From NCBI GenBank assembly GCA_002269645.1, contig NIVC01001610.1, positions 124,001 to 188,000 on the forward strand: 64,000 bases of DNA, given 5' to 3'. The first letter of the stretch is position 1. Each line of letters begins with the position of its first letter. Below are positions 6,800 through 45,290 of the stretch, piece by piece. Source of the DNA: Macrostomum lignano (lineage: Eukaryota). The position numbers and the translations under genes are program-made. Below the pieces are notes generated by a model that made no database searches, had not been told where the DNA came from, and saw nothing but the letters and a program-made list of their open reading frames with translations.

Positions 6800-8345
6800 T
6801 CAATGAGTATACACTTCACCAAAAAATTCTGGCGGGGCACGGGCCCTCTCACTTCGGCGCAATACAGGCTGTTCTGGATGCTCTGGAACATCAGCAGGGG
6901 CGCCGACCGGGGCGCCGATTGGGGTGCCGGCTGGGGCGCCGACCGGGGCGCCGACTGGGGCGCCGGATGGGGCGCCGGCTGGGACGCCGTCAAATCTCAG
7001 GTCGTCCTCGTCAGGATTGTGCAGTTGCGCCGCTGGTTGCAATTGAGGTGCTGCAGCTGGACTGGCCGTGTTGCATGGCTTCAGGCGATTGAAATGCACC
7101 ACCCTTCGCCGTCGTGCATTGGCCTCGTGCTGAATGCGGTAGGTGACGTCTGAGATCTGCTTTTTAACGCGCCATGGCCCAGTCCACCATCGATGAAATT
7201 TTCGGCTCTCGCCTCGCTTCAGCGCCGGATTGTGCAGCCAGACCAGATCGTTCTCGCTGAATGCCTCGCCGTGGCACCTCCTGTCGTACGCTGCCTTCTG
7301 GTGCAGTTGCGCTGCCGCCAAGTTTTGTCGCGCCCTCTCGTGCGATGTCTGCAGCCGGCTCCGCAGCTCGGCCACCCATTCACAAGGACGTTGCCTATCC
7401 GGCGCCAGACCTCCGTATGCCAAGTCCAGTGGTAGTCGCAGTTCCCGGCCGAAATGCATCGCCGAAGGTGTCTGACCAGTCGACTTGTGGACTGAAGTGC
7501 GGTAGCCCATCAGTGCAATCTGCAGATGAAGATCCCAGTCTCGCTGATTCTCGTTCACCCATGCTCGCAGCAGCTGCACCAGTGTCCGGTTCATCCGTTC
7601 GCAACCGCCGTCTCCTTCAGGGTGGTAGCCTGTCGTCCGAGTCTTGTCGATTTTCAGCAGCCGCATCGTCTCTTGAAACAGCTGTGACTCCCAGTTCCGA
7701 CCCTGGTCGGTGTGCACCGACTGCGGGACTCCAAAGCGAGCCACCCACTCGTTGACAAACGTCCGGGCTGTGGTCTCAGCGTCTTGAGACGGCAGTGGAA
7801 AGGCCTCAGTCCACTTGCTGAAGGTGTCGATGACTACCAGGATGACTGAATTTCCACGATCGGTCCTCGCAGGCCCACCATGAAGTCCATTTCCAGTCGC
7901 TGGCCAACGCTGCCGACCGCCATGCTCTGTAGAGGTGCCCGCCTGTGCTGGCCAGAATCTTTCAGTGTCGCGCATTCGAGGCACGCAGCACACCAGTCAG
8001 TCACATCTGCTGTCATTCCAGGCCAGTAGAGTCGCGCCCTGATCTTTTCTATGGTCTTCTGCGGTCCGCAGTGGCTGCCGCTCGTTCCAGCATGAGCTTC
8101 GACAAAAACATCGCGCTGTAGACTCTCTGGCACCAGCAGCTGCTGACAAAAGGCGCTGCCATCTTCGGATTCCCATCGGCGGCACAGCAGTCCGTTCACC
8201 AGTGTCAGCCGCTTAAACTCGGACAGCAGTTGCCGCTGCCGATTGCTCCAGCCGTCCGTCTCTGCCTTATCCGGTGGTTGCCCATCTCGCAAGCAGTTCG
8301 CCAGCTTCTGCATGCACCGATCCTCTGCCTGTGCTCGTCGAATCG
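6800..8345 (-). pseudogene. Gypsy integrase (HHCC zinc finger, DDE core, GPW motif), frameshifted
   Basis: HAGTSGSHCG...WCAACLEC; MDF, TDQG and CERMN catalytic motifs; WTGPWRV. A 1-nt loss near 7868 (GLxRTDRGN) splits it into ORFs 7834..8313 and 6800..7993, and it is out of frame with gag. Confidence 0.9.
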
Positions 8346-15300: not shown

Positions 15301-18300
15301 GGTAACGTACTCAAGACTCAACAGCAAATTTTTCCCTTCAATTTGATACGTCTTAACTACTGTTAGTAGCGTCCATCCATACCTCGATTCCGTTGGCGAT
15401 GTGTCGGTACTCGGGGCAGATCAGAGATGCGCCGGCGTAGGCTGCGTCCACGTGACACCAGAGACCTTCGCTCTGGCCTGCGGCGAAAAATTTTATGCAT
15501 CAAGTAAGACATTGTTTCGTTTGTGTAATTTAACTCCATCAGAGTTTGCTGAAACTACTCGGTGGCTTACAGACTTCTCCCAGTTCAGCCAAGTTGTCGA
15601 AGGCGCACGAGTTCGTTGTGCCTAGCGTAGTAATCAGCTGGATTGTTGTGTGTTATTGCATTGACTTAGGATTCTCACTCTTTGATTACGAATTGCGGTT
15701 AAGCCAACAAAATAGTTTTACTGCCCCTCTGAACCCCTCACCACTGCAGCCACCTCACTCCCTGCCCCTCCGAACCCCTCACCACTGCAGCCACCTCACT
15801 CCCTGACCCTCTGAACCCCTCACCACTACAGCCACCTCACTCCCTGCCCCTCCGAACCCCCCACCACTGCAGCCACCTCACTCCCTGCCCCTCCGAACCC
15901 CTCACCACTGCAGCCACCTCACTCCCTGCCCCTCTGAACCCCTCACCACTACAGCCACCTCACTCCCTGCCCCTCCGAACCCCTCACCACTGCAGCCACC
16001 TCACTCCCTGCCCCTCTGAACCCCTCACCACTACAGCCACCTCACTCCCTGCCCCTCCGAACCCCTCACCACTGCAGCCACCTCACTCCCTGCCCCTCTG
16101 AACCCCTCACCACTACAGCCACCTCACTCCCTGCCCCTCCGAACGCCTCACCACTACAGCCACCTCACTCCCTGCCCCTCCGAACCCCTCACCACCGCAG
16201 CCACCTCACTCCCTGCCTCTCCGAACCCCTCACCACTACAGCCACCTCACTCCCTGCCCCTCCGAACCCCTCACCACTGCAACCACCTCATTCACTCCCT
16301 GCACCTCTCCAAAATCCAAAATCCATGGCTGCACCAACCAAAATAGGCTCGAGTCCTCTGGCCCGGTCTTCAGCCACAGCTCGGGCCAAGGTGTCGCCCC
16401 TCAGCGAGCGCTTGCCATCTGTAGGCAGCTTGCGCAACTGCACAAAAGCCAGCATTGCGGCCCGCTCCACCGAAGAGTGGCTCTGAGAAAGCAGATTTTG
16501 AAAAAATAATGTTTTTTTGAAAGCAGATGTTGAAAAAAGGACGCAAATCACAATTAAGAATTCGAGCGGAAGGTCAAAAAATTTTTAAGAAAATTTGAAG
16601 GCACTTCGACAGGCAATTTCGAGTGATTTTTTCCACTAATCTTTTGAAGAACCACCTGCATTGATAGGGCGAACATGTTTGTCAGAATTTTTCAGAATTT
16701 GTCAGAATTTGATCGGAAGCGAATCCCTGATGACCGGAAGCGAATCCTTCATGACCGGAAGTGAATCCCTGATGACCGAAAGCGAATCCTTCATGACCGG
16801 AAGCGAATCCCTCATGACCGGAAGCGAATCCCTCATGACTGGAAGCGAATCCCTCATGACCGGAAGTGAATCCCTCATGACCGGAAGCGAATCCCACCTG
16901 ATCGGACACGAATCCCTCATGACCAGAAGCGAATCCCTAATGACCGGAAGCGAATCCCTCATGACCGGAAGCGAATCCCTTATGACCAGAAGCGATTCCC
17001 TAATGACCGGAAGTGAATCCCTCATGACCGGACGCAAAATCACCAGCCACTCACCTGATCGGAGGCGTAGGCCACCAACCGCGAGAGCGCCAGACTCGGC
17101 TGCTGCTGCGCCTCCGGTCGCTGCGCCTGCAAGCGCTGGATGGCCAGGTTCCTGGCTGACAGGAAGATCACCAAGGTGGCCTCGCTTGCCGAGCCCTGGA
17201 TCACGCCGCCGCCCCCGCTTCCGCCGCTGCCGCCGCCAGCTGGGAACAGGAAGTGATCGGGCAGGCCCAGAGCCTTGGCCAGCCAGTCCATCATGACAGT
17301 CTCAAGTTCCGTGCAAGCTGGACTGGCGATCTGAGTGCAGGTTGTACATTCGGTTCACTTCATTCTAATTTAACACATTTTTTAATTTCCTAAATAGGAC
17401 TTTCTGGATCATTAAGGCTTTGTCTCTTCTTTGAACCAGCTTAGCTTAGCCTTATACATGATACATGATAACACCATGATCCAGATTACATGTACATGAT
17501 TACACCTGCCCTAATAGGTAGATGTGCAACCGACAGCTCACTGGACTGGGGGTCGCCATACACCCTCAATTAACCCAGCTAATGCTGGCACCCATTTTAC
17601 AGCTGGGTGAACTGAAGCAATGCAGAGTTAAGTGTCTTGCTCAAGGACACAGATTTTTCCAGAGGGATCCGGAATCGAACCCCCGACCTTCAGGTCGTGA
17701 GTCCAAGGCTACATACAAACCCCCTTGGGACCAAACTGCGCTGGCTACCTCAGTGATGATGCATTTTTCTTAAAATTCGTTCTGTTTTCGTCTATCTTCA
17801 CTAACAAGCCTACTTATAGTAGAAAAATACAGTCAAGCAAGGCTATTTTCCATGAAAACAGCTGCACAAACGCACCCAGGAGAAGCCAATGCAGCCAATG
17901 GCGTCACTCAGCATGTCGGCCAGAATTGACGGAAAAGTGTTGGCCGTCGGGTAGTAGGCGTGGAACTGCGGATGGTGCCAGTTTGTCACCTGGGCGTGGG
18001 GTGAGCACGGGTTGATTGACGCTCAGTTGACAAGAGCTAGCTGAGAACAGATACCCCAGTCTCACCCCGGACACACCAGCTAGCTGGGAACAGATACCCA
18101 GTCTCACCCCGGACACACCAGCTAGCTGAGAGCAGACACTCCAGTCTCACCCCGGACACACCAGCTAGGTGAGAGCAGACACTCCAGTCTCACCCCGGAC
18201 ACATCAGCTAGCTGAGAACAGATACCCCAGTCTCACCCCGGACACACCAGCTAGCTGGGAACAGATACCCAGTCTCACCCCGGACACACCAGCTAGCTGA

Positions 18301-19765: not shown

Positions 19766-20654
19766 TTTGCATCAAGGAGGGTAGAAGCTCAGAATTTCAA
19801 GAGCTGTCTAATTTTACAATTATAAATCTGTTTTAAGAGCTAAAGTAATATCTAATACATTTTTTACAAAAACATGTAGTTTCTTTAAATGTAGTAACTG
19901 AAAGCATGCATATTTTGTGGCAAAGTGATATGCATTCTGTTTTTTCAAAATACAGTACTTTTCTAAAGCCAAGGCGGCGTGGCGTCATCAGCAGCACCTC
20001 CTGCACCGAATGTAGGCAAGCTGCAACTGTTTTTTTCCCTTTTCCAGATGAAGAGGCTCTGGGAGATAAGAGAGAGAGAGAGGAGGGGGAAGCTGAGCTG
20101 CCATCTGCCGGCTTCATCAATAAGCACTGAAGGATTTGGCAGCCATGAGTTCGGGACTAGGAGTAACCTCCAACCTCTGCACCGAGATCTTGCAGAGATC
20201 TGGCATAGCCATACGAGCGTAAGGCTTCTGCGGTTATTTTCCCCTGTGTGTTTCAATGTGCAATGCTGACAAGCCTCACAAATGCGGAGATATTGCCTTA
20301 TTGGCCCGATTCTATCCAGCTGATAAGCATGCAGCAAAGAATAAGAATGAAGTAAAGCAAACGCGCGAAATGTAACAGACCTGATTCCACAGCTTTCTAC
20401 TCGCATCTGAGGGCCTCGCTACACCAAACTGACAAGTGGCACAGGTGTTTTTGGCAGTGAATGATGTACGGTATGACACTGGGTAAACACAGACTCCAGC
20501 AACTGGGGCGTTGATGCGACTGACTGATCTGCACTTGTCCCGCTTCTATGCCTCAGCTAACTGGCTGTGGGGGGAGGGGAGGGAGAGGATGGGAGCAACT
20601 GAGATGGGGAAATAAATAATGAGAAAATATCCTGCTACACAGCTACACAACCCA

Positions 20655-21795
20655 GCTGAGAAAGGCAGACAGCCCAGCTGAGAGGCAGACAGCCCAGCTG
20701 AGAGGCAGACAGCCCAGCTGAGAGAGGCAGACAGCCCAGCTGAGAGAGGCAGACAGCCTAGCTGAGAGAGGCAGACAGCCCAGCTGAGAGAGGCAGACAG
20801 CCCAGCTGAGAGAGGCAGACAGCCCAGCTGAGAGAGGCAGACAGCCCAGCTGAGAGAGGCAGACAGCCCAGCTGAGAGAGGCAGACAGCCCAGCTGAGAG
20901 AGGCAGACAGCCCAGCTGAGAGAGGCAGACAGCCCAGCTGAGAGAGGCAGACAGCCCAGCTGAGAGAGGCAGACAGCCCAGCTGAGAGAGGCAGACAGCC
21001 CAGCTGAGAGAGGCAGACAGCCCAGCTGAGAGAGGCAGACAGCCCAGCTGAGAGAGGCAGACAGCCCAGCTGAGAGAGGCAGACAGCCCAGCTGAGAGAG
21101 GCAGACAGCCCAGCTGAGAGAGGCAGACAGCCCAGCTGAGAGAGGCAGACAGCCTAGCTGAGAGAGGCAGACAGCCCAGCTGAGAGAGGCAGACAGCCTA
21201 GCTGAGAGAGGCAGACAGCCCAGCTGAGAGAGGCAGACAGCCCAGCTGAGAGAGGCAGACAGCCCAGCTGAGAGAGGCAGACAGCCCAGCAGAGAGGCAG
21301 ACAGCCCAGCAGAGAGGCAGACAGCCCAGCTGAGAGAGGCAGACAGCCCAGCTGAGAGAGGCAGACAGCCCAGCTGAGAGAGGCAGACAGCCCAGCTGAG
21401 AGAGGCAGACAGCCCAGCTGAGAGAGGCAGACAGCCCAGCTGAGAGAGGCAGACAGCCTAGCTGAGAGAGGCAGACAGCCCAGCTGAGAGAGGCAGACAG
21501 CCTAGCTGAGAGAGGCAGACAGCCCAGCTGAGAGAGGCAGACAGCCCAGCTGAGAGAGGCAGACAGCCCAGCTGAGAGAGGCAGACAGCCCAGCAGAGAG
21601 GCAGACAGCCCAGCAGAGAGGCAGACAGCCCAGCTGAGAGAGGCAGACAGCCCAGCTGAGAGAGGCAGACAGCCCAGCTGAGAGAGGCAGACAGCCCAGC
21701 TGAGAGAGGCAGACAGCCCAGCTGAGATAGGCAGACAGCCCAGCTGAGAGAGGCAGACAGCCCAGCTGAGAGAGGCAGACAGCCCAGAGGCAGAC
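20655..21795. repeat. 22-bp minisatellite (agagaggcagacagcccagctg) abutting the Tob ATG
   Basis: Direct observation. Confidence 0.98.
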
Positions 21796-29591: not shown

Positions 29592-32500
29592 ATGAGCTCT
29601 GGTGAGTTTGACTGCTTTTTCTTACACATTGTTCTTTTAGTGCGATTGTAGACAGGAGGGGCACCCTGTGTTGGTTGGAAGAGTGCCTATTAGAATACGA
29701 GGTTATTCGAATAAGAAAGACGTCATTAGTATGAGATGCGCCATTCTAGTATGAGAGGCGCCATTCCTAGCATAAAATGCCCATTCCAGTATTAGAGGCG
29801 CCATTCTAGTATGAGATGCACCATTTTAGTATGAGATGCACCATTCTAGTATGAGATGCGCCATTCTAGTGTGAGATGCGCTATTCTAGTATGTGATGCG
29901 CCATTCTAGTATGAGATGCGCCATTCTAGTATTAGACGCGCCATTATAGTATGAGAGGCGCCATTCTAGTATGAGATGCGCCATTCTAGTATGAGATGCG
30001 CCATTCTAGTATGAGATGCGCCATTCTAGTATGAGATGCGCCATTCTAGTATTAGAGGCGCCATTCTAGTATGAGAGGCGCCATTCTAGTATTAGAGGTG
30101 CCATTATAGTATGAGAGGCGCCATTCTAGTATGAGATGCACCATTCTAGTATGAGATGCGCCATTCTAGTATGAGATGCACCATTCTAGTATGAGATGCG
30201 CCATTCTAGTATGAGATGCACCATTCTAGTATGAGATGCGCCATTCTAGTATGAGATGCACCCTTCTAGTATGAGATGCGCCATTCTAGTATGAGATGCG
30301 CCATTCTAGTATTAGAGGCGCCATTATAGTATGAGAGGCGCCATTCTAGTATGAGAGGCGCCATTCCTAGCATAAAATGCGCCATCCCAGTATTAGAGGC
30401 GCCAATTTAGTATGAGATACACCAGTCTTGTATCAGAGGCGCCATCCTAGTATGAGATGCGCTATTCTAGTAGGAGAGGCGCTATTCCTAGCGTAAGATG
30501 CGTCATTTTAGTATTAGAGACGCCAATCTAGTATGAGATACACCACCCTAGTATCAGAGGCACCATTTTAGAATGAGATGGGCCATTATGTAGTTTAGGA
30601 TGCGCCATTCTAGTATGAGATGCACCTTTCTAGTATGAGAGGCGCTATTCTAGTATGCGAGGCGTCATTCTACTGTAATAGAATTGTAATAGAGGCTAGT
30701 ATGAGATGCACCTTTCTAGTATGAGAGGCGCTATTCTAGTATGCGAGGCGTCATTCTACTGTAATAGAATTGTAATAGAGGCTAGTATGAGATTCACTGG
30801 AATAGGGACAAGTTTGCTGGAGTTGGAGTCATGGTAGTGGAATTGGAGTCAGGGTGCTGGAGTTGAAGTCAGGGTGCTGAAGTTGGAGTCAGGGTGCTGG
30901 AGTTGGAGTCAGGGTGCTGGAATTGGAGTCAGGGTGATGGAATTGGAGTCAGGGTGATGGAGTTGGAGTCAGGGTGATGGAGTTGGAGTCAGGGTGATGG
31001 AGTTGGAGTCAGGGTGCTGGAGTTGGAGTCAGGGTAGTGGAATTGGAGTCAGGGTGATGGAGTTGGAGTCAGGGTGCTGGAGTTGGAGTCAGAGTGATAG
31101 AGTTGGAGTCAGGGTGATGGAATTGGAGGCAGGGTGCTGGAACTGGAGTCAGGGTGATAGAGTTGGAGTCAGGGTGATGGAGTTGGAGTCAGGGTGATAG
31201 AGTTGGAGTCAGGGTGATGGAATTGGAGGCAGGGTGCTGGAACTGGAGTCAGGGTGATAGAGTTGGAGTCAGGGTGATGGAGTTGGAGTCAGGGTGATAG
31301 AGTTGGAGTCAGGGTGATGGAATTGGAGGCAGGGTGCTGGAACTGGAGTCAGGGTGATAGAGTTGGAGTCAGGGTGATGGAATTGGAGGCAGGGTGCTGG
31401 AACTGGAGTCAGGGTGATAGAGTTGGAGTCAGGGTGATGGAACTGGAGTCAGGGTGCTGGAGTTGGAGTCAGGGTGATGGAATTGGAGGCAGGGTGCTGG
31501 AACTGGAGTCAGGGTGCTGGAGTTGGAGTCAGAGTGATAGAGTTGGAGTCAGGGTGCTGGAGTTGGAGTCAGAGTGATAGAGTTGGAGTCAGGGTGCTGG
31601 AGTTGGAGTCAGAGTGATAGAGTTGGAGTCAGGGTGATGGAATTGGAGGCAGGGTGCTGGAACTGGAGTCAGGGTGATAGAGTTGGAGTCAGGGTGATGG
31701 AGTTGGAGTCAGGGTGATAGAGTTGGAGTCAGGGTGATGGAATTGGAGTCAGGGTGATGGAGTTGGAGGCAGGGTGCTGGAACTGGAGGCAGGGTGGGAC
31801 TTTAATTAGGGCTAAAATTTGTCAGTGGAACATAACCTCACAATCATATGCCATCATCAAACACGAATCTCTCTTACACCCAGAAAACCAGTCGCATTAA
31901 AGTGCATTGGGAACTCTAGTAGGGCTTTGCGAAAGTGCAACCCCACTGGGCAGAGCCGCCCTCCAGCCGTACATGCACTTGCCTGCTCGCCTGCATGCAC
32001 CGTTGGAGGAGAGGCCAGCATCAAGGGGCGCGTGAAGGGGGGGGTAGCGCAGACGGGGGCAGGCGGACTAGAAGTTCGGCTTGATTGATTTCGAGTGTAA
32101 AAGTGCAAACTGCGGCTTTTCGTTGGGAAAAAAATCCCCGGGGCTGGCAGGGAAGGACGCTGAGGAGGAGGAGGAGGGGTTGAAGCCGAAAACCTGGAGT
32201 GCTGGGATAGAGAAGGAGATGGGAAAAAGTTCCCTATAACTCTCTCTCTCTCTCTCTCTCCAGGTTCGTACCCCCATGCCGCTCACTTTCTCAATGCGCC
32301 CGCCGGGTCTTGCTTCTTGTCTTCTTCTTTCAATCTGGAGAGGCCCGAGATGCAAACTAGAGACAGGGAGAGGGAAGGGACGCTGTGTGGTTTAGGCTCA
32401 CTGGCGAGTGCGTCATCTCTTGGAGCAGACAAAGTGCACTAAGGAGAATATAAGGGGACATTATTTGGCTTTCTGTCACGCTCCCAGGTCTGACGGATAG

Positions 32501-35500: not shown

Positions 35501-38500
35501 TAAAAATCTGAGAAAAGGGCGTTAGGGAGAGAAAATGCGATAAAAGCTGTCTAAATAGTCCACCACCCCCCATCCAGGCCAGCTCGCCTCAGCTCTCCCG
35601 CCCCCCTTCTCTAATCCAGGCACCTGCCCTGGATGCGCTTTAGAATCCGCCCCAAGCCGGGTCAATTCAGGTCAAGGCGAACAGCAGCGCGGCAGAGAGG
35701 AGAGACGGAGGGGTTGGCTGGGCCGACTGAACTGGAGAGAGAGCAGCCCTCCCACTCTACCCCACTTCTAGCTGTCCCAATCTATCCTCACGGTGCAAGA
35801 GGGGAAGGAGGCGGCTAGGTCCAGGGTTGCACTATTTTTCAGCGGACATTCCCAACCGCCGGCGCGGCTGCTCTGGACCAGAAATCTCTGGTTCACCCTG
35901 CGTCAACTTGCTGGTTATTTTAAGTCCTTAGTTCAAAAACATTAGCCGAAACCAATCGAAAGTTCATTCAGGGGTCGCATCCTCTTTTTTTAGACAACAA
36001 CCAAGGTTAGGTCCATCAGAAATCACTAACAAAGTTTCTAGATCCTTTAAAAATAATTTTAAAATCTTCCAAGTGTACCGACGAAATCATCAAAAACCTT
36101 TCCAAGTCCTTCGAAAATCATCAACAACTCTTCCAAGTCCTTCGAAAATCATCAACAACTCTTCCAAGTCCTTCAAAATCATCAACAACTCTTCCAAGTC
36201 CTTCGAAAATCATCAACAACTCTTCCAAGTCCTTCGAAAATCATCAACAACTCTTCCAAGTCCTTCAAAATCATCAACAACTCTTCCAAGTCCTTCGAAA
36301 ATCATCAACAACTCTTCCAAGTCCTTCGAAAATCATCAACAACTCTTCCAAGTCCTTCAAAATCATCAACAACTCTTCCAAGTCCTTCGAAAATCATCAA
36401 CAACTCTTCCAAGTCCTTCAAAATCATCAACAACTCTTCCAAGTCCTTCAAAATCATCAACAACTCTTCCAAGTCTTTCAGAATCATCAACAACTCTTCC
36501 AAGTCTTTCAGAATCATCAACAACTCTTCCAAGTCTTTCAGAATCATCAACAACTCTTCCAAGTCTTTCAGAATCATCAACAACTCTTCCAAGTCCTTCA
36601 AAATCATCAACAACTCTTCCAAGTCTTTCAGAATCATCAAAAACTCTTCCAAGTCTTTCAGAATCATCAACAACTCTTCTAAGTCTTTCAGAATCATCAA
36701 CAACTCTTCCAAGTCCTTCAAAATCATCAACAACTCTTCCAAGTCTTTCAGAATCATCAACAACTCTTCTAAGTCTTTCAGAATCATCAACAACTCTTCC
36801 AAGTCCTTCAAAATCATCAACAACTCTTCCAAGTCTTTCAGAATCATCAACAACTCTTCTAAGTCTTTCAGAATCATCAACAACTCTTCCAAGTCCTTCA
36901 AAATCATCAACAACTCTTCCAAGTCTTTCAGAATCATCAACAACTCTTCCAAGTCTTTCAGAATCATCAACAAATCTTCTAAGTCTTTCAGAAGGGGGGC
37001 CGTAGCCCAGCGGTCTAGCGCAGGCTCTGGTATGCCAGCGACCCAGGCTCGATTCCAAGTGCAGTCACATTAATTTGGGGCTCAATTGGAATCTCGGCTT
37101 GGCTCTGCTCGTGCAATTAACGGCCTTGAGAGCCAACCCCCCAAGGCGCAGTGAAGTGTACATGCCTGACGATAAAATAAAGTTAGGGCCGCTGTACACT
37201 CCTGTGTGAGTGTGTGCCTGCGTACGTATCCGCGCGCTTGTGTGCCTGCTCAGAGGAGTCGGCGGAATGGGCAGTAATGCCTCTCGCCGGTTGTGTGTTG
37301 ATGTCGCTTAAAGTGCGCCAGGGTGCACACAACCTCCCTGCCTCTAATAAGAAAAGTCTTTCAGAATCATCAACAACTCTTCCAAGTCCTTCGAAATCAT
37401 CCACAACTCTTCCAAGTCCTTTGAAATCATCCACAACTCTTCCAAGTCCTTTGAAATCATCCACAACTCTTCCAAGTCCTTTGAAATCATCAACAACTCT
37501 TCCAAGTCCTTTGAAATCAGCAACAACTCTTCCAAATCTTTCTAGGGAGTCATGAGCCAGTTCTGCTGCGGTTGCGGTTGAGCAGACGGCTACGCTGACT
37601 GGTACAAATTTATTAAATGTTAACACAATTTAAGGAAAAAAGTTACACCTATAAGGGGTGGAGCCGTAGCCTGGATGCGGCGAGAGTTGAACACCCTGTG
37701 ATCTCCTGGACTGATTCTTCTTCTGACTTCTTCTGAGGAATTCTAGGCTGGCGCGCTGCAACATAGGTTTTGTTAATAAGTTCCTTCGCCTGACCTTCTA
37801 ACTCCCTTTTTGTCTTAAACCTCTGTCCCACTCTGCATTCCACTCGCTTTCTCACCTTCTTTCCCATTCTCTTATCTCGAGAACATGAACCTATGATAAA
37901 TATTCTCAACTCTATCAACTCTATATTTTGGCCTCTGCAACTCTTTACTGGACAACATGAGCAAACCGTATCTATTTAATTCGTGCTCTGCATCAATTTT
38001 GACAGATTCAGCGGCCCGCCAGGCAGCAGCCGCTGCTCAAGCAGCTCCGGCTGAAGAAGGCGCCGTCGGAGGTGGCGGTGGGGCCGGCGCGGGCCAGCGC
38101 AGGACCGGCCGGGTGAAATGGTTCAACGTGGCCAAGGGCTTCGGCTTCCTGACTCCTGACGACGGCGGTGCAGATGTCTTCGTTCACCAGGTGTGAAAAG
38201 CTGCTGAGATGAACAGGCGGTCTCTAATTATAGGATTGGAGGGTGTTGGCGGTCTCTAATTATAGGATTGGAGGGTGTTGGCGGTCTCTAATTATAGGAT
38301 TGGAGGGTGTTGGCGGTCTCTAATTATAGGATTGGAGGGTGTTGGCGGTCTCTAATTATAGGATTGGAGGGTGTTGGCGGTCTCTAATTATAGGATTGGA
38401 GGGTGTTGGCGGTCTCTAATTATAGGATTGGAGGGTGTTGGCGGTCTCTAATTATAGGATTGGAGGGTGTTGGCGGTCTCTAATTATAGGATTGGAGGGT

Positions 38501-40186
38501 GTTGGCGGTCTCTAATTATAGGATTGGAGGGTGTTGGCGGTCTCTAATTATAGGATTGGAGGGTGTTGGCGGTCTCTAATTATAGGATTGGAGGGTGTTG
38601 GCGGTCTCTAATTATAGGATTGGAGGGTGTTGGCGGTCTCTAATTATAGGATTGGAGGGTGTTGGCGGTCTCTAATTATAGGATTGGAGGGTGTTGGCGG
38701 TCTCTAATTATAGGATTGGAGGGTGTTGGCGGTCTCTAATTATAGGATTGGAGGGTGTTGGCGGTCTCTAATTATAGGATTGGAGGGTGTTGGCGGTCTC
38801 TAATTATAGGATTGGAGGGTGTTGGCGGTCTCTAATTATAGGATTGGAGGGTGTTGGCGGTCTCTAATTATAGGATTGGAGGGTGTTGGCGGTCTCTAAT
38901 TATAGGATTGGAGGGTGTTGGCGGTCTCTAATTATAGGATTGGAGGGTGTTGGCGGTCTCTGCAGGATTGGAGGTGTTGGCGGTCTCTGCAGGATCGGAG
39001 GGTGTGGCGGTCTCTGCAGGATCGGAGGGTGCAGCAGTGAAAATTTATCGATTGCTACATCGATTATATTACAAAGAGGGTGTAGAGTGCCTCTTTCCCC
39101 ACCCCCGCCGCAGTCCGCCATCCAGATGCAGGGCTTCCGCAGCCTGGGCGACAACGAGTGCGTCGAATTCGAAGCGCAACCGGCGGCCCGCGGCGAGGAG
39201 GCGACGCTGGTGTGCGGGCCGGGCGGCGCAGACTGCATCGGCAGCCACCGCAGACCGGTCGGGAAGAAGAAGCGAAGAGTCAGGCGAGTGAAGGGACTAG
39301 TAGGGGCGAGATGAGATAATCTCCATGGTGAGGAGAGAGAGATTAGCGAGAGTGGAGAGAGAGATTAGCGACAGTGGAGGGAGAGATTAGCGAGAGTGGA
39401 GGGAGAGATTAGCGACAGTGGGGAGAGAGATTAGCGACAGTGGAGAGAGAGATTAGCGACAGTGGAGGGAGAGATTAACGACAGTGGAGGGAGAGATTAG
39501 CGACAGTGGAGGGAGAGATTAGCGAGTGTGGAGAGAGAGATTAGCGACAGTGGAGGGAGAGATTAGCGACAGTGGAGGGAGAGATTAACGACAGTGGAGA
39601 GAGAGATTAGCGACAGTGGAGGGAGAGATTAGCGACAGTGAGGAGAAAGATTAGCGACAGTGGAGAGAGAGATTAGCGACAGTGGAGAGAGAGATTAGCG
39701 ACAGTGGAGGGAGAGATTAGCGACAGTGGAGGGAGAGATTAGCGACAGTGGAGGGAGAGATTAGCGACAGTGGGGAGAGAGATTAGCGACAGTGGAGAGA
39801 GAGATTAGCGACAGTGGAGGGAGAGATTAGCGACAGTGGAGGGAGAGATTAGCGACAGTGGAGGAAGAGATTAGCGACAGTTGAGGGAGAGATTAGCGAC
39901 AGTGGAGAGAGAGATTAGCGACAGTGGAGGGAGAGATTAGCGAGAGTGGAGAGAGGCTGATTAAAACAAAGCCAGAACTGAGGACACTGAGATGACAAAG
40001 CAGGCAACAGAGATTCCCCACTTCTGCTCGCTCCAGGTGCTACAACTGCGGCCAGTTCGCAGATCACGTGGCCGCCGAGTGTCCCGCCGGGCCCATGCCG
40101 AAGTCTTGCTATCACTGTCGCGGCGGCGATCACCTCGTGGCCGACTGTCCGAGACGGCAGGGCGTTGGCGGCGGCGGCGGCGGTGG

Positions 40187-40217
<31 letters not shown>

Positions 40218-40256
40218 GGCGGCGGCGGCGGTGGTGCATTCAGTGAGTCGCGGTGA
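29592..40256 (+). CDS. LIN28: Lin28 (cold-shock domain + two CCHC zinc knuckles), 4 exons
   Basis: Exons 29592-29601 (ATGAGCTCTG|gtgagt, phase-matched but inferred), 38006-38190, 39114-39283 (GC donor), 40037-40256. [22 protein letters not shown]...[17 protein letters not shown]; knuckles [15 protein letters not shown] and [14 protein letters not shown]; C-terminal 23-Gly run. Confidence 0.93.
29720..30800. repeat. 20-bp minisatellite (atgagatgcgccattctagt), array 1
   Basis: Lin28 intron 1; same family as 32755-34405. Confidence 0.95.
30820..31790. repeat. 20-bp minisatellite (ggagttggagtcagggtgat)
   Basis: Lin28 intron 1. Confidence 0.95.
32755..34405. repeat. 20-bp minisatellite (atgagatgcgccattctagt), array 2
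   Basis: Lin28 intron 1. Confidence 0.95.
36060..37545. repeat. 30-bp minisatellite (aaatcatcaacaactcttccaagtccttcg) interrupted by a SINE
   Basis: Direct observation; source of the Ser/Thr-rich artefact ORFs. Confidence 0.95.
36994..37353 (+). mobile_element. Full-length tRNA-derived SINE (family 2), 360 bp
   Basis: A-box TAGCCCAGCGG, B-box GGCTCGATTCC, A-rich end; 13-bp TSD AAGTCTTTCAGAA at 36981-36993 and 37354-37366. Confidence 0.88.
38215..39010. repeat. 32-bp minisatellite in Lin28 intron 2
   Basis: Unit gcggtctctaattataggattggagggtgttg. Confidence 0.97.
39330..39955. repeat. 22-bp minisatellite in Lin28 intron 3
   Basis: Unit gagagattagcgacagtggagg. Confidence 0.95.
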
Positions 40257-41049
40257 CTTGGCAGATGACGGAACAGTCTGCCCAAATATGTTCGGGTCAA
40301 TGATTGCCAGAAAAAATCTTAAAGGCGATGTTTGCAGGCAGGCAGTCCGGCTTAGCAACAAAATACGAGCGTAGTTGCCGAAGAGGCAGCCTGCCTAGGA
40401 GATTCGGTAAGCAGCTTGTCTGGGCGGTGTTTAATAGCTGTTTTCAACTTGACCCAAAATATAAATAAGACCAAAATTGCTAAGTAATTTTGCCTGCCTC
40501 AATTATAGCAGCCGAGCGCGGGCAGCCCAGCTGCGCATTTTTGTTATTTTTTGTAGCTTTTTTGTCAATTTTCAACCGTACTTAGATTGGCCGCTTCGGT
40601 CTCTTCCGCGTACTGCAGTTTTCAAGTCAAGTCGAAGCAGCCAGAATATTTTTTTCTCTCTCTTGGCTCGCTTTGGTCCAAAAATACTCGTATTATCGCA
40701 GCTATCACCGCCCCCATCCCGTGCTGCTCCCGCTCGCCTCTATGGAAGCGCTGCATCATTTTTTCGCGGTGCGTCATTTTGCGCCTGTCCGTTTTCAAGG
40801 CTTCGACTGTTTTGCCTGCCTGTTTTTTGTCTCTTTCTTTGAAAAGCTTGGCTATGCGTGCCAATGATTGAATGATTGAATTTCGGCCCTCCCAAGATTT
40901 TAAGAGCAAAAGTACTTATAGGAGCTATATCTCTGTATTTTGAATGTTGAACATGTCTTTGGAAAGAAAAGATTTAAGCTTAAACTATAGTAAAATAAAT
41001 TGAACTAGAGATACTTATCAATACCATTTAGGGCAGTCTAACAAATCCA

Positions 41050-41490
41050 ATCTCGATTGTCTCAGTAATCTCGAATCTCCATTGTCTCATTAATCTCCAA
41101 TCTCCATTGTCTCAGTAATCTCCTATCTCCATTGTCTCAGTAATCTCCAATCTTCATTGTCTCAGTAATCTCCAATCTCCATTGTCTCTGTAATCTCCAA
41201 TCTCCAATATCTTAGTAATCTCCAATCTCCATTGTCTCAGTAATCTCCAATCTTCAATATCTCAGTAATCTCCAATTTCCATTGTCTCTGTAATCTCCAA
41301 TCTCCAATATCTTAGTAATCTCGAATCTCGAATCTCCATTGTCTCAGTAATCTCCAATCTCCATTGTCTCAGTAATCTCCATTGTCTCAGTAATCTATAA
41401 TCTCCAATATCTCAGTAATCTCCAATTTTCTAATATCTTAGTAATCTCCAATCTCCATTGTCTCAGTAATCTCCAATCTCCAATCTCGGA
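41050..41490. repeat. Degenerate ~20-26 bp repeat (tctccattgtctcagtaatctccaa)
   Basis: Direct observation. Confidence 0.9.
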
Positions 41491-42086
41491 TGCCTTGAGA
41501 CAGGATAGAAAATATCTACGAGCTGTCTGCAATTCCCTCTCAGGAATTTATTGGGCAAATAATAAAAATGGAGACGTTATTTATGCAAAAACAAAAATCT
41601 GAATGACTTTAAACACTCAATAAGATTAGCACAGCATATAATCCTATAATCTCGAGCCATGACAGTTTTATATTTTCCAAAGACCTTTGACGAACCAATT
41701 GCTAAAAAGACATTGAAGCAGCCTTAAATTCTATCAGGTCAACAGGAGCTGTTTCACTGTGTTTTTGTACAGGTAAATATTTTTGTTATTGTTGTGAAAA
41801 TTGGATTCAACTGCGGCTCATGATGCCACTGCGGTTTGTGTCTTTTTCGTTGACTTGATGCACAGTGTACCAATCATAGTAGCTATTAGATTCCGTGTTT
41901 GCTGTACTATCCCCAACCAAATATTATGATACTAGTTCAAGCTTGGCGAATAAACTACAAAAAGGCTTAGTCCTTGTTTTTATTTTTTCGGTTGCTGTCT
42001 CCTTGAATGCGCAAGTGGTATTAATTGTTTTTTATTGATAATCCGACTCCTTAAGCTCTTTATATCTACTCGTAAAAATAAGCTCG

Positions 42087-42255
42087 CTACTACCTCTATC
42101 CATAACGTGAGATCGTGTATTCTTTCAATTTATTAGTTTTTGTTTGACTGCGTGAAACCAACCTCATTGGCAATACTACCTCTATCATCAGGGTTTTTTG
42201 TGGCTTAATAATTTTTGTTTAACTGCACTTAATTACCTCAAAAAACGGCTACCTC
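42087..42255 (+). promoter_or_regulatory. Cluster of four let-7 seed-match sites in the putative Lin28 3' UTR
   Basis: CTACTACCTC 42087-42096, TACTACCTC 42174-42182, TACCTCA 42234-42240, CTACCTC 42249-42255. Confidence 0.7.
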
Positions 42256-42799
42256 GTCAAGTTTGCTTTTTGGCAAAACTGACGTGACGCTTCTTTCAGG
42301 CCAACGGGTTTCAACTAAAGTATATTTTTTTATCAGATGTTGCTGTATTCCTAATTTATAGATATCAAAAACTCAATTTTGTTGCTTTTACTTTTATTTT
42401 AACGTAGTTCGCTTAATTAGCAACTGTGAGCTTCTCTGTGCAAAATGTGGCAATATTTCTCGATAAAGAGTCGTGTTTCTTTGCAGTGTTAAAAAACCAA
42501 AAACTAGACGGCTGCTCCACCTTTCCAGAGTATTTATTTACTCAAGATTTACTCAATCTATAATTTATTGAATGTAACTGTAATACCCACGCATTCATTC
42601 ATACTTAATCCTCATATTCTAACTCGCGTGTTGAGTCTTTGTCCACCATTTTAAATACATATTAATTCAAAAGGTACCTGCAAGCCTATTTGGCTCTGCC
42701 ACGGGTTACTTTACTCTAAGACAAATCAATTTCTGTGTGAGGCATCGATTTCTTATTGCTTTTAGGCTGGCATCTGCCTACGGCACTTACAAGACACTA

Positions 42800-44170
42800 G
42801 CGTCACAGCAGCATGTACAGGCAATATACTGACATCACAGCAGCATGTACAGACACTATACTAACATCACAGCATGTACAGGCAATATACTGACATCACA
42901 GCAGCATGTACAGGCACTATACTGACATCACAGCAGCATGTGCAGGCACTATACTGACATCACAGCAGCATGTGCAGGCAATATACTGACATCACAGCAT
43001 GTACAGACACTATACTGACATCACAGCATGTACAGACACTATACTGACATCACAGCATGTACAGACATTATACTGACATCACAGCATGTATAGACACTAT
43101 ACTGACATCACAGCATGTACAGACACTATACTAACATCACAGCATGTACAGACACTATACTGACATCACAGCATGTACAGACATTATACTGACATCACAG
43201 CATGTACAGGCACTATACTAACATCACAGCATGTACAGACACTATACTAACATCACAGCATGTACAGACACTATACTAACATCACAGCATGTACAGACAC
43301 TATACTAACATCACAGCATGTACAGACACTATACTGACATCACAGCATGTACAGACACTATACTGACATCACAGCATGTACAGACATTATACTGACATCA
43401 CAGCATGTACAGGCACTATACTAACATCACAGCATGTACAGACACTATACTGACATCACAGCATGTACAGACACTATACTAACATCACAGCATGTACAGA
43501 CACTATACTAACATCACAGCATGTACAGACACTATACTGACATCACAGCATGTACAGACATTATACTGACATCACAGCATGTACAGACACTATACTAACA
43601 TCACAGCATGTACAGACACTATACTAACATCACAGCATGTACAGACACTATACTGACATCACAGCATGTACAGACACTATACTAACATCACAGCATGTAC
43701 AGACACTATACTAACATCACAGCATGTACAGACACTATACTGACATCACAGCATGTACAGACATTATACTGACATCACAGCATGTACAGACACTATACTG
43801 ACATCACAGCATGTACAGACACTATACTAACATCACAGCATGTACAGAAACTATACTAACATCACAGCATGTACAGACACTATACTGACATCACAGCATG
43901 TACAGACATTATACTGACATCACAGCATGTATAGACACTATACTGACATCACAGCATGTACAGACACTATACTAACATCACAGCATGTACAGACACTATA
44001 CTGACATCACAGCATGTACAGACACTATACTGACATCACAGCATGTACAGACACTATACTGACATCACAGCATGTACAGACACTATACTGACATCACAGC
44101 ATGTACAGACACTATACTGACATCACAGCATGTACAGACACTATACTGACATCACAGCATGTACAGACAC
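42800..44170. repeat. 29-bp minisatellite (cagcatgtacagacactatactgacatca)
   Basis: Direct observation. Confidence 0.97.
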
Positions 44171-44567
44171 TAGCTGACACAAAGAAAAATAAAAAACAGC
44201 TAAAATTGTGCGAGTCTGAAGCAGCCCAGACTCAAAAGCAACTCAGCTAACACAGTGCAAATTAAGATGGGTATATTTTTATGATAAAAAATTTCCAACA
44301 AAGCCGTCCAAGGACAGCAACAGTAACTTGGTGAAGATGGACACAGACAGTGATTTTGCAGAATCTGTTTGTCAGCTGTCTCTCCAGCAGCTAGCTGTGC
44401 ACGGATTCCAACCTCAAAAAAACATTAGCATATGCTTAGCGCAACCTTCAACTGAACCCAACAGTCGAACAGAAACAGTGGAAAACAGATTGCTCAAGAG
44501 CCGCTAGTAACACTGAAATGAGGAGTATTTATTTGAATGCCGAATTTCGCTTCAACTTGCATTGGTC

Positions 44568-44855: not shown

Positions 44856-45290
44856 CTAAGCGGTCAGCAGTGCGCGCAAAGCAGCGTCCAGATCAGCGCC
44901 GTTTTCCCGCAGGCAGCGCTCGGCAGCCGACTGGCTGATCTCGAACTCCCTGGCTAGCAGGTCCGCGTGCTCCTTGGCGACCTTCACTTTGCTCAGCTCG
45001 CGCTCCCGCCGCTGCTTCTCCGCCTGGTCCAGCGCCTGCCTGGCCGACACCGCACGCATCGCTTCGCCGATTTCGCCGCCAGCCGAGCGACCGCCAGCCA
45101 ACTCGGCCTCTTCAACGTAGTCAGTCACTTTGCCGAGCTCGCGAGCGCCGCGGGCCTCCAGTTTCGACTGCTTGGCTGCTGCCACCGCTTCTCCGTCGGC
45201 CTCCAGCTGGGCCTCCGGCTCTGAGCATTCTTCGTCTGATTCGGCAGCCGCCGCAGCAGCAGCAGCGTCCTTGCCGCAGTTGTCCTTGGC
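44856..45290 (-). CDS. HYPK: Huntingtin-interacting protein K (main coding exon; start unresolved)
   Basis: ELGKVTDYVEEAE...RERELSKVKVAKEHADLLAREFEISQSAAERCLRENG matches HYPK DLERVTDYAEEKE...REKELAKV...MEISRAAAERSLREH. Acceptor taattcag at 45291; phase 0; no ATG before the conserved core. Confidence 0.85.
   Translation of the reverse strand, partial: AKDNCGKDAAAAAAAAESDEECSEPEAQLEADGEAVAAAKQSKLEARGARELGKVTDYVEEAELAGGRSAGGEIGEAMRAVSARQALDQAEKQRRERELSKVKVAKEHADLLAREFEISQSAAERCLRENGADLDAALRALLTA

Follow-up and report, generated by a model that had tools for sequence, protein, structure and literature searches.

Sites for let-7 in the 3'UTRs of lin-28 and LIN28 genes, and the double-negative loop formed by Lin28 and let-7, are textbook knowledge in C. 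elegans and vertebrates. Mammalian let-7 targets such as IGF2BP1/IMP-1 escape let-7 by 3'UTR shortening via alternative polyadenylation, and A+U-rich flanks and a spacing of 8 nt are associated with effective, cooperative miRNA sites. LIN28A and LIN28B are described both as direct let-7 targets and as let-7 inhibitors (PMC4512107). The let-7 seed is perfectly conserved in schistosomes and planarians (PMC3384580). The literature searched yielded no study of Lin28 and let-7 in Platyhelminthes, no paper linking lin-28 with Macrostomum and no flatworm paper mentioning lin-28.

Here we describe a cluster of four let-7 seed matches behind a Lin28 gene of the flatworm Macrostomum lignano, within a window of 64,000 nt, the whole stretch of genomic DNA that was analysed. 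The gene family and the microRNA seed are the same as in C. elegans lin-28 and vertebrate LIN28A and LIN28B, and, as in these genes, several sense-strand sites follow the stop codon in a long UTR, which in M. lignano is putative. In contrast to the known genes, the M. lignano sites are gathered in a single 169-nt block that lies 1.8 kb past the stop, behind a minisatellite and three AATAAA hexamers; also, the block belongs to the flatworm lineage, derives partly from local duplication and carries a miR-125/lin-4 site that is just a 6-mer. With the escape of IGF2BP1/IMP-1, the locus has in common that all its let-7 sites lie beyond a promising proximal poly(A) signal, such that a short isoform would be immune, whereas it differs from these targets in having no canonical distal signal near the sites; an escape of this kind is not known for Lin28 in a flatworm. 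The M. lignano element is thus a probable flatworm member of a long-known regulatory loop.

The Lin28 gene and its surroundings

The sequence-only reading had named the gene upstream of the sites Lin28, and Pfam and protein matches identify it as a genuine one, in which two CCHC zinc knuckles follow a cold-shock domain. Pfam reports CSD (E = 8.7e-25), zf-CCHC and a Lin-28A-like second knuckle on the protein, and the spliced product retains both CX2CX4HX4C motifs intact. The best protein match is M. lignano BOX15_Mlig018021g1 (P0001; E = 1.3e-105), followed by more than 100 matches named 'protein lin-28 homolog' from arthropods, molluscs, annelids and brachiopods; P0001 belongs to a protein cluster of three, of which two are NCBI gene models. 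M. lignano also has a diverged Lin28 paralogue, P0006, with 67% identity. Around Lin28, the window shares 96-98% identity with two GCA_002269645.1 contigs, L001 and L002. With the protein match, this assigns it to M. lignano, a free-living flatworm that regenerates, and it probably represents one more copy or allele of this recently duplicated genome. The coding sequence is divided over four exons:

29592 to 29601, + strand: coding portion of Lin28 exon 1, ATGAGCTCTG, with a GTGAGT donor behind it; agrees with the beginning of the NCBI model on L001; translation MSSDSAARQ...
38006 to 38190, + strand: Lin28 exon 2, encoding the N-terminal half of the cold-shock domain (Pfam CSD); identical to P0001 here
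39114 to 39283, + strand: Lin28 exon 3, remainder of the cold-shock domain and a basic linker, with a GC donor (GCGAGT) next
40037 to 40256, + strand: Lin28 exon 4, coding part, two CCHC knuckles, a poly-Gly tract and the TGA stop at 40254-40256

The donor of intron 3 (39284-39289) is apparently GC (AG/GCGAGT, the slash marking the end of the exon), since this is the sole splice that gives the annotated protein, ...RRVR/CYNCG. The spliced translation is 194 aa long and differs from P0001 by a longer C-terminal poly-Gly run and one extra V just before it. The underlying (GGC)n tract at 40167-40235 holds 23 codons in the window and 6 in both L001 and L002, so that copies or alleles differ greatly in the length of this coding repeat.

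Downstream, a gene for a HYPK-like protein and an INSIG gene occupy the opposite strand, and both neighbours are likewise found on L001 and L002. The HYPK-like gene bounds the intergenic space, so the room for a Lin28 3'UTR extends from 40257 to about 44500. Four long minisatellites lie in the Lin28 introns and behind the gene, and together with the neighbouring exon they are placed as follows:

38216 to 38988: minisatellite of 24 copies of a 32-mer, in the stretch of Lin28 introns and downstream region
39332 to 39955: minisatellite of 28 copies of a 22-mer, in the same stretch
41046 to 41482, + strand: minisatellite of about 17 copies of a 25-mer, between the stop and the let-7 sites; its length varies among genomic copies
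42809 to 44179, + strand: minisatellite of about 47 copies of a 29-mer
44856 to 45185, - strand: last coding exon of the convergent neighbour, an open reading frame for a HYPK-like UBA protein; PF19026 gene on L001 and L002

Outside the repeats the window, L001 and L002 diverge by 0-3%, and minisatellites account for nearly all divergence among them. ACTATAC, complementary to let-7 nt 15-21, is part of the 29-nt unit of the last minisatellite (CAGCATGTACAGACACTATACTGACATCA) and recurs about 47 times on the sense strand; as it comes without a seed match, this is probably chance. Elsewhere in the window, an open reading frame on the - strand (6800-7993) encodes retroviral-type integrase core and Integrase_p58_C domains and represents an LTR retrotransposon fragment.

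The let-7 sites and their clustering

The four let-7 matches announced by the sequence-only reading are all present on the + strand, which is the Lin28 sense strand, and comprise three 7mer-m8 sites and one 7mer-A1 site. They do lie behind the Lin28 stop, as had been said, at a distance that needs a small correction: the first site is 1831 nt downstream, that is about 1.8 kb and not about 1.9 kb, and the four together span 1831-1999 nt past the stop. From the stop to 42087 there is no 6-mer, 7-mer or 8-mer let-7 match. The sites and two weaker motifs among them are:

42087 to 42096, + strand: let-7 site 1, CTACTACCTC, pairing with let-7 nt 2-11 (7mer-m8 plus three more pairs)
42160 to 42166, + strand: degenerate let-7 site AACCTCA, matching nt 2-6 plus A1
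42174 to 42182, + strand: let-7 site 2, TACTACCTC, pairing with let-7 nt 2-10
42188 to 42193, + strand: TCAGGG, 6-mer match to miR-125/lin-4 nt 2-7, possibly chance
42234 to 42240, + strand: let-7 site 3, TACCTCA, 7mer-A1
42249 to 42255, + strand: let-7 site 4, CTACCTC, 7mer-m8, 8 nt after site 3

The lin-4/miR-125 hexamer had been offered as additional support; it is where it was said to be, yet having neither m8 nor A1 it is too weak to serve as evidence, and it adds little, since the chance of one TCAGGG in 170 nt is estimated at about 4%. With let-7, sites 1 and 2 form duplexes of -18.7 and -18.4 kcal/mol, which rank in the top 0.1-0.5% among all 30-nt windows in the region, site 1 in the top 0.1%. 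The flanks of the sites are 62-70% A+U, and fold z-scores against shuffles are 0.01 and 0.04 on the two strands, corresponding to no significant structure; an A+U-rich and unstructured region suits accessible UTR sites. Only tiny open reading frames are present in the let-7 region, and an Rfam search of it at E <= 1 returned nothing. Between the two downstream minisatellites, the 1.3-kb block is single-copy in the roughly 120 kb examined, and an origin from a dispersed repeat or transposon was rejected, there being no second copy in the window, L001 or L002.

Over the whole 64 kb, CTACCTC is not over-represented (8 observed, 7.5 expected), and the departure from chance lies in the clustering of the sites and not in their overall count. 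Clustering was assessed in the 2791 nt of non-repeat sequence from the Lin28 stop to the HYPK stop, counting m8 and A1 sites. There, let-7 is the sole heptamer seed (1 of 16,384) with four sites in any 170-nt window; just three other heptamers reach three sites per 170 nt, and two of those are T-rich. In 5000 first-order Markov simulations, 4180 sequences were without a let-7 site and 72 had two or more; a single one had three sites in total, and the biggest simulated cluster was two sites. The let-7 clustering is therefore far beyond chance, with the reservation that duplication inflates the count, so the four sites are not four independent events. Across the window, nine let-7 sites fall on the + strand and one on the - strand. 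A lone perfect let-7 8mer, CTACCTCA, is located at 17745-17752 on the + strand, just past an open reading frame at 16661-17296.

Part of the cluster arose by an old local tandem duplication (about 86 nt) of a two-site module. Sites 1 and 2 are held by an identical 13-mer, TACTACCTCTATC, in two copies 86 nt apart, TTGGCAA(T/A)ACT is repeated at a distance of 103 nt, and a direct repeat of 22 nt forms part of the duplicated module:

42130 to 42151, + strand: 22-nt direct repeat, copy 1, TTATTAGTTTTTGTTTGACTGC
42205 to 42226, + strand: 22-nt direct repeat, copy 2, TTAATAATTTTTGTTTAACTGC, 75 nt from copy 1

The second site of the module is the decayed AACCTCA at 42160-42166 in the first copy and the intact TACCTCA of site 3 in the second, while site 4 has no counterpart in the duplicated module. 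The spacers separating the conserved pieces are unequal in length (29 vs 18 nt) and dissimilar in sequence, whereas the seed-bearing 13-mer is 100% identical. Seeds kept while spacers diverged are the pattern expected of selection on seeds; with two copies only, the comparison is suggestive. The 22-nt element, which is U-rich (TTAWTARTTTTTGTTTRACTGC), is 86% identical between the module copies and could serve another factor as a binding site.

L001 and L002 carry the same four sites unchanged, but their flanks, like the 1.3-kb block as a whole, are 98% identical too. Over 41557-42757 each 100 positions hold just 1-6 differences between the copies, and the non-repeat parts of introns and intergenic DNA resemble each other to the same degree; with similarity everywhere, the identity of the sites among copies says nothing on selection. 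The Lin28 locus of the annelid Paralvinella palmiformis (L008) has four TACCTCA, within 20356-20816, at +1165, +1219, +1286 and +1625 from the stop; three of these fall within 121 nt, and an AATAAA lies inside the cluster at +1258. An intronless Lin28 transcript contig from an unknown species (Logan DRR659550, L003) likewise has four TACCTCA, at +32, +789, +934 and +1464. At both L008 and L003, let-7 is among the top 0.5% of heptamers, and those ahead of it are mostly of low complexity. As in M. lignano, four seed matches are thus present in 0.5-1.5 kb of 3' sequence, whereas the L008 and L003 sites are all of the 7mer-A1 type (TACCTCA) and those of M. lignano are mostly 7mer-m8 with extended pairing; the UTRs have no sequence homology to that of M. 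lignano, and the likeness is one of architecture only. A further Lin28 transcript, L004, is devoid of let-7 sites, and at the Capitella Lin28 locus there are two, of which one falls within the annotated gene model; both points count against a let-7 response element in M. lignano. Clusters of several let-7 sites 1-2 kb behind Lin28 are hence common, not universal, among the four sequences sampled, and the clusters in other Lin28 sequences make a long Lin28 3'UTR in M. lignano unsurprising.

Possible ends of the Lin28 mRNA

Any effect of the sites on Lin28 would depend on their inclusion in its mRNA. The AATAAA hexamers that the sequence-only reading had noted at 41561 and 41949 were found, and a further one, previously unmentioned, is present at 40994. 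The candidate poly(A) signals behind the stop are:

40994 to 40999, + strand: first AATAAA after the stop, weak downstream context (G+T 40% at +10 to +50)
41561 to 41566, + strand: second AATAAA, weak downstream context
41949 to 41954, + strand: third AATAAA, with the U/GU-rich element cttgtttttattttttcggttgctg (T 57%, G+T 75% at +10 to +50)
42462 to 42467, + strand: GATAAA, candidate non-canonical distal poly(A) signal, followed by the GU-rich gtcgtgtttctttgcagtgtt
44188 to 44193, + strand: next canonical AATAAA, past the 1.37-kb minisatellite; its use would give a 3'UTR of about 3.9 kb

In downstream context the signal at 41949, located 133 nt upstream of site 1, far surpasses the others compared. 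Past the sites there is no AATAAA or ATTAAA for 1.9 kb, until 44188. Five one-mismatch variants of AATAAA occur between the sites and the next minisatellite, GATAAA, ACTAAA, AAAAAA, AATACA (42654) and AATCAA, and GATAAA is a candidate by its context. Three routes remain from this arrangement: transcripts could read through a good signal to a weak one, they could run to 44188, or the sites could be outside the mRNA. The three AATAAA before the sites, with the GU-rich element at 41949, count against the sites being in the mRNA, as does the stretch of 1.9 kb past them that has neither AATAAA nor ATTAAA. The NCBI Lin28 gene model is CDS-only, P0001 is recorded solely on an NCBI genome contig, and exact look-ups of four open reading frames of the downstream region and of the diverged paralogue returned no RNA-derived contig. 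Inclusion is nevertheless favoured, since the sites are improbable by chance and match what Lin28 should carry. Inclusion is also favoured by a report of the M. lignano annotators, who had to join partial transcripts over repetitive DNA as long as 10 kb, in keeping with 3' regions broken up by repeats like that of Lin28. We infer that the Lin28 mRNA probably reaches the let-7 sites.

We consider it reasonably likely that a let-7 response element occupies the 169 nt at 42087-42255, distally in a long Lin28 3'UTR that also bears a minisatellite. Local duplication of a two-site module accounts for part of the growth of the cluster. As let-7 accumulates in differentiating cells, let-7-loaded Argonaute would bind the four seed matches, with pairing extended to nt 10-11 at two of the sites and the two others 8 nt apart. 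Binding would subsequently repress the Lin28 mRNA, as in the corresponding arm of the double-negative loop of nematodes and vertebrates. Both this predicted repression and the reciprocal block of let-7 maturation in M. lignano, in which Lin28 would bind pre-let-7 at a GGAG in the terminal loop, would follow from the analogy with those animals.

A second explanation, also proposed by the sequence-only reading, combines the sites with regulated alternative polyadenylation. Here a short mRNA ending near 41970 would lack the sites and a long mRNA would carry them, and cells that need Lin28, such as neoblasts and the germline, would use the proximal site. The 41949 signal, with the best U/GU-rich context and 133 nt upstream of site 1, fits such a switch, and so does the fact that all four let-7 sites, and no others, are distal to it; against it, the evidence consists of hexamer positions, and a canonical distal signal near the sites is missing. 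We regard it as a possibility that falls well short of being probable. On the further point that poly(A)-site choice, and not the level of let-7 alone, decides whether Lin28 is retained in neoblasts and germ cells, by way of a let-7-blind short form, we are more doubtful still. The sites could, on the other hand, be outside the Lin28 mRNA and non-functional, one or two chance matches having been multiplied by tandem duplication. The 13-mers 86 nt apart and the 22-mer repeat 75 nt apart do speak for duplication, the locus is rich in tandem repeats, and a strong poly(A) signal stands upstream. However, chance seldom yields even two independent sites in 2.8 kb (72/5000 simulations), and neither site 4 nor the TACCTCA of site 3 is a simple copy, the first-module counterpart being degenerate (AACCTCA). 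Moreover, the 13-mer stayed 100% identical while the spacers came to differ (29 vs 18 nt, and in sequence), the outlier among 16,384 heptamers is the very one predicted beforehand for Lin28, and similar clusters are found in other Lin28 sequences. Taken with these points, a non-functional origin appears unlikely.

Two further explanations place the cluster in a transcript other than the Lin28 mRNA. A separate non-coding transcript of the + strand, such as a let-7 'sponge' or a downstream-of-gene transcript, would agree with the lack of coding potential in the region, with the good poly(A) signal that precedes it and with the minisatellites on both sides; it would require an extra, unsupported transcription unit, though, and same-strand linkage to Lin28 is more simply explained by a long UTR, which makes it very improbable. 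The - strand might instead encode a let-7-family microRNA, since GAGGTAGTAG is read twice there and the reverse complements of sites 1 and 2 carry let-7 nt 2-11 and nt 2-10. Such a gene has next to no probability and was rejected: the sequence forms no precursor hairpin (z-score 0.04 vs shuffles) and has no Rfam match at E <= 1, the base 5' of the seed is A and not U, and the similarity to let-7 stops after nt 10-11. The search of the 64-kb window likewise found no let-7 gene or other RNA family.

let-7 in M. lignano and the meaning of the sites

A let-7 response element presupposes that the animal has let-7, and reads in its small RNAs have been reported (PMC4604429), so an absence of let-7 from M. 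lignano, which would have undone the proposal, is unlikely. Supplementary Table 2 of Zhou et al. 2015 (PMC4604429) contains M. lignano reads 100% identical to let-7/let-7a of miRBase. In the 'Regeneration day 3' library, let-7/let-7a are present at 55-70 rpm and no vertebrate-only miRNAs are found (PMC4604429). We take the reads of this library, known from this literature table, as endogenous. The 'irradiated worm' library, in which let-7 is highest, also holds let-7c/f/g/i and miR-103/107, and the 'dividing cell' library holds miR-122 (PMC4604429). Between them these two libraries contain a set of vertebrate-only miRNAs, namely let-7c/f/g/i, miR-103/107, miR-101 and miR-122 (PMC4604429), which suggests that both are contaminated. 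Owing to this suspected contamination, the differential-expression claims of the table for conserved miRNAs need care. A 53-fold rise of let-7 in irradiated worms was rejected as a sign of expression in differentiated cells, the library being one with vertebrate-only miRNAs. Lin28 was not found in the published supplementary lists of M. lignano neoblast and germline genes; the text of these lists is possibly incomplete, and its silence is not evidence of absence.

For the general picture, the M. lignano sites change nothing, and a specialist would expect let-7 sites behind Lin28. If the sites work, the let-7-to-Lin28 arm of the heterochronic loop would extend to Platyhelminthes. M. lignano has abundant adult neoblasts and strong regeneration, transgenesis is established in it, and small-RNA data and 3'-end data are public, the latter being CEL-seq/T-fill reads (SRP082513, Grudniewska et al. 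2016) that served Wudarski et al. 2017 for poly(A) calling. Functional sites would give a testable handle on the release of flatworm stem cells into differentiation and, if the switch between two mRNA forms were also true, they would be part of a flatworm stem-cell timer that is directly testable by transgenesis.
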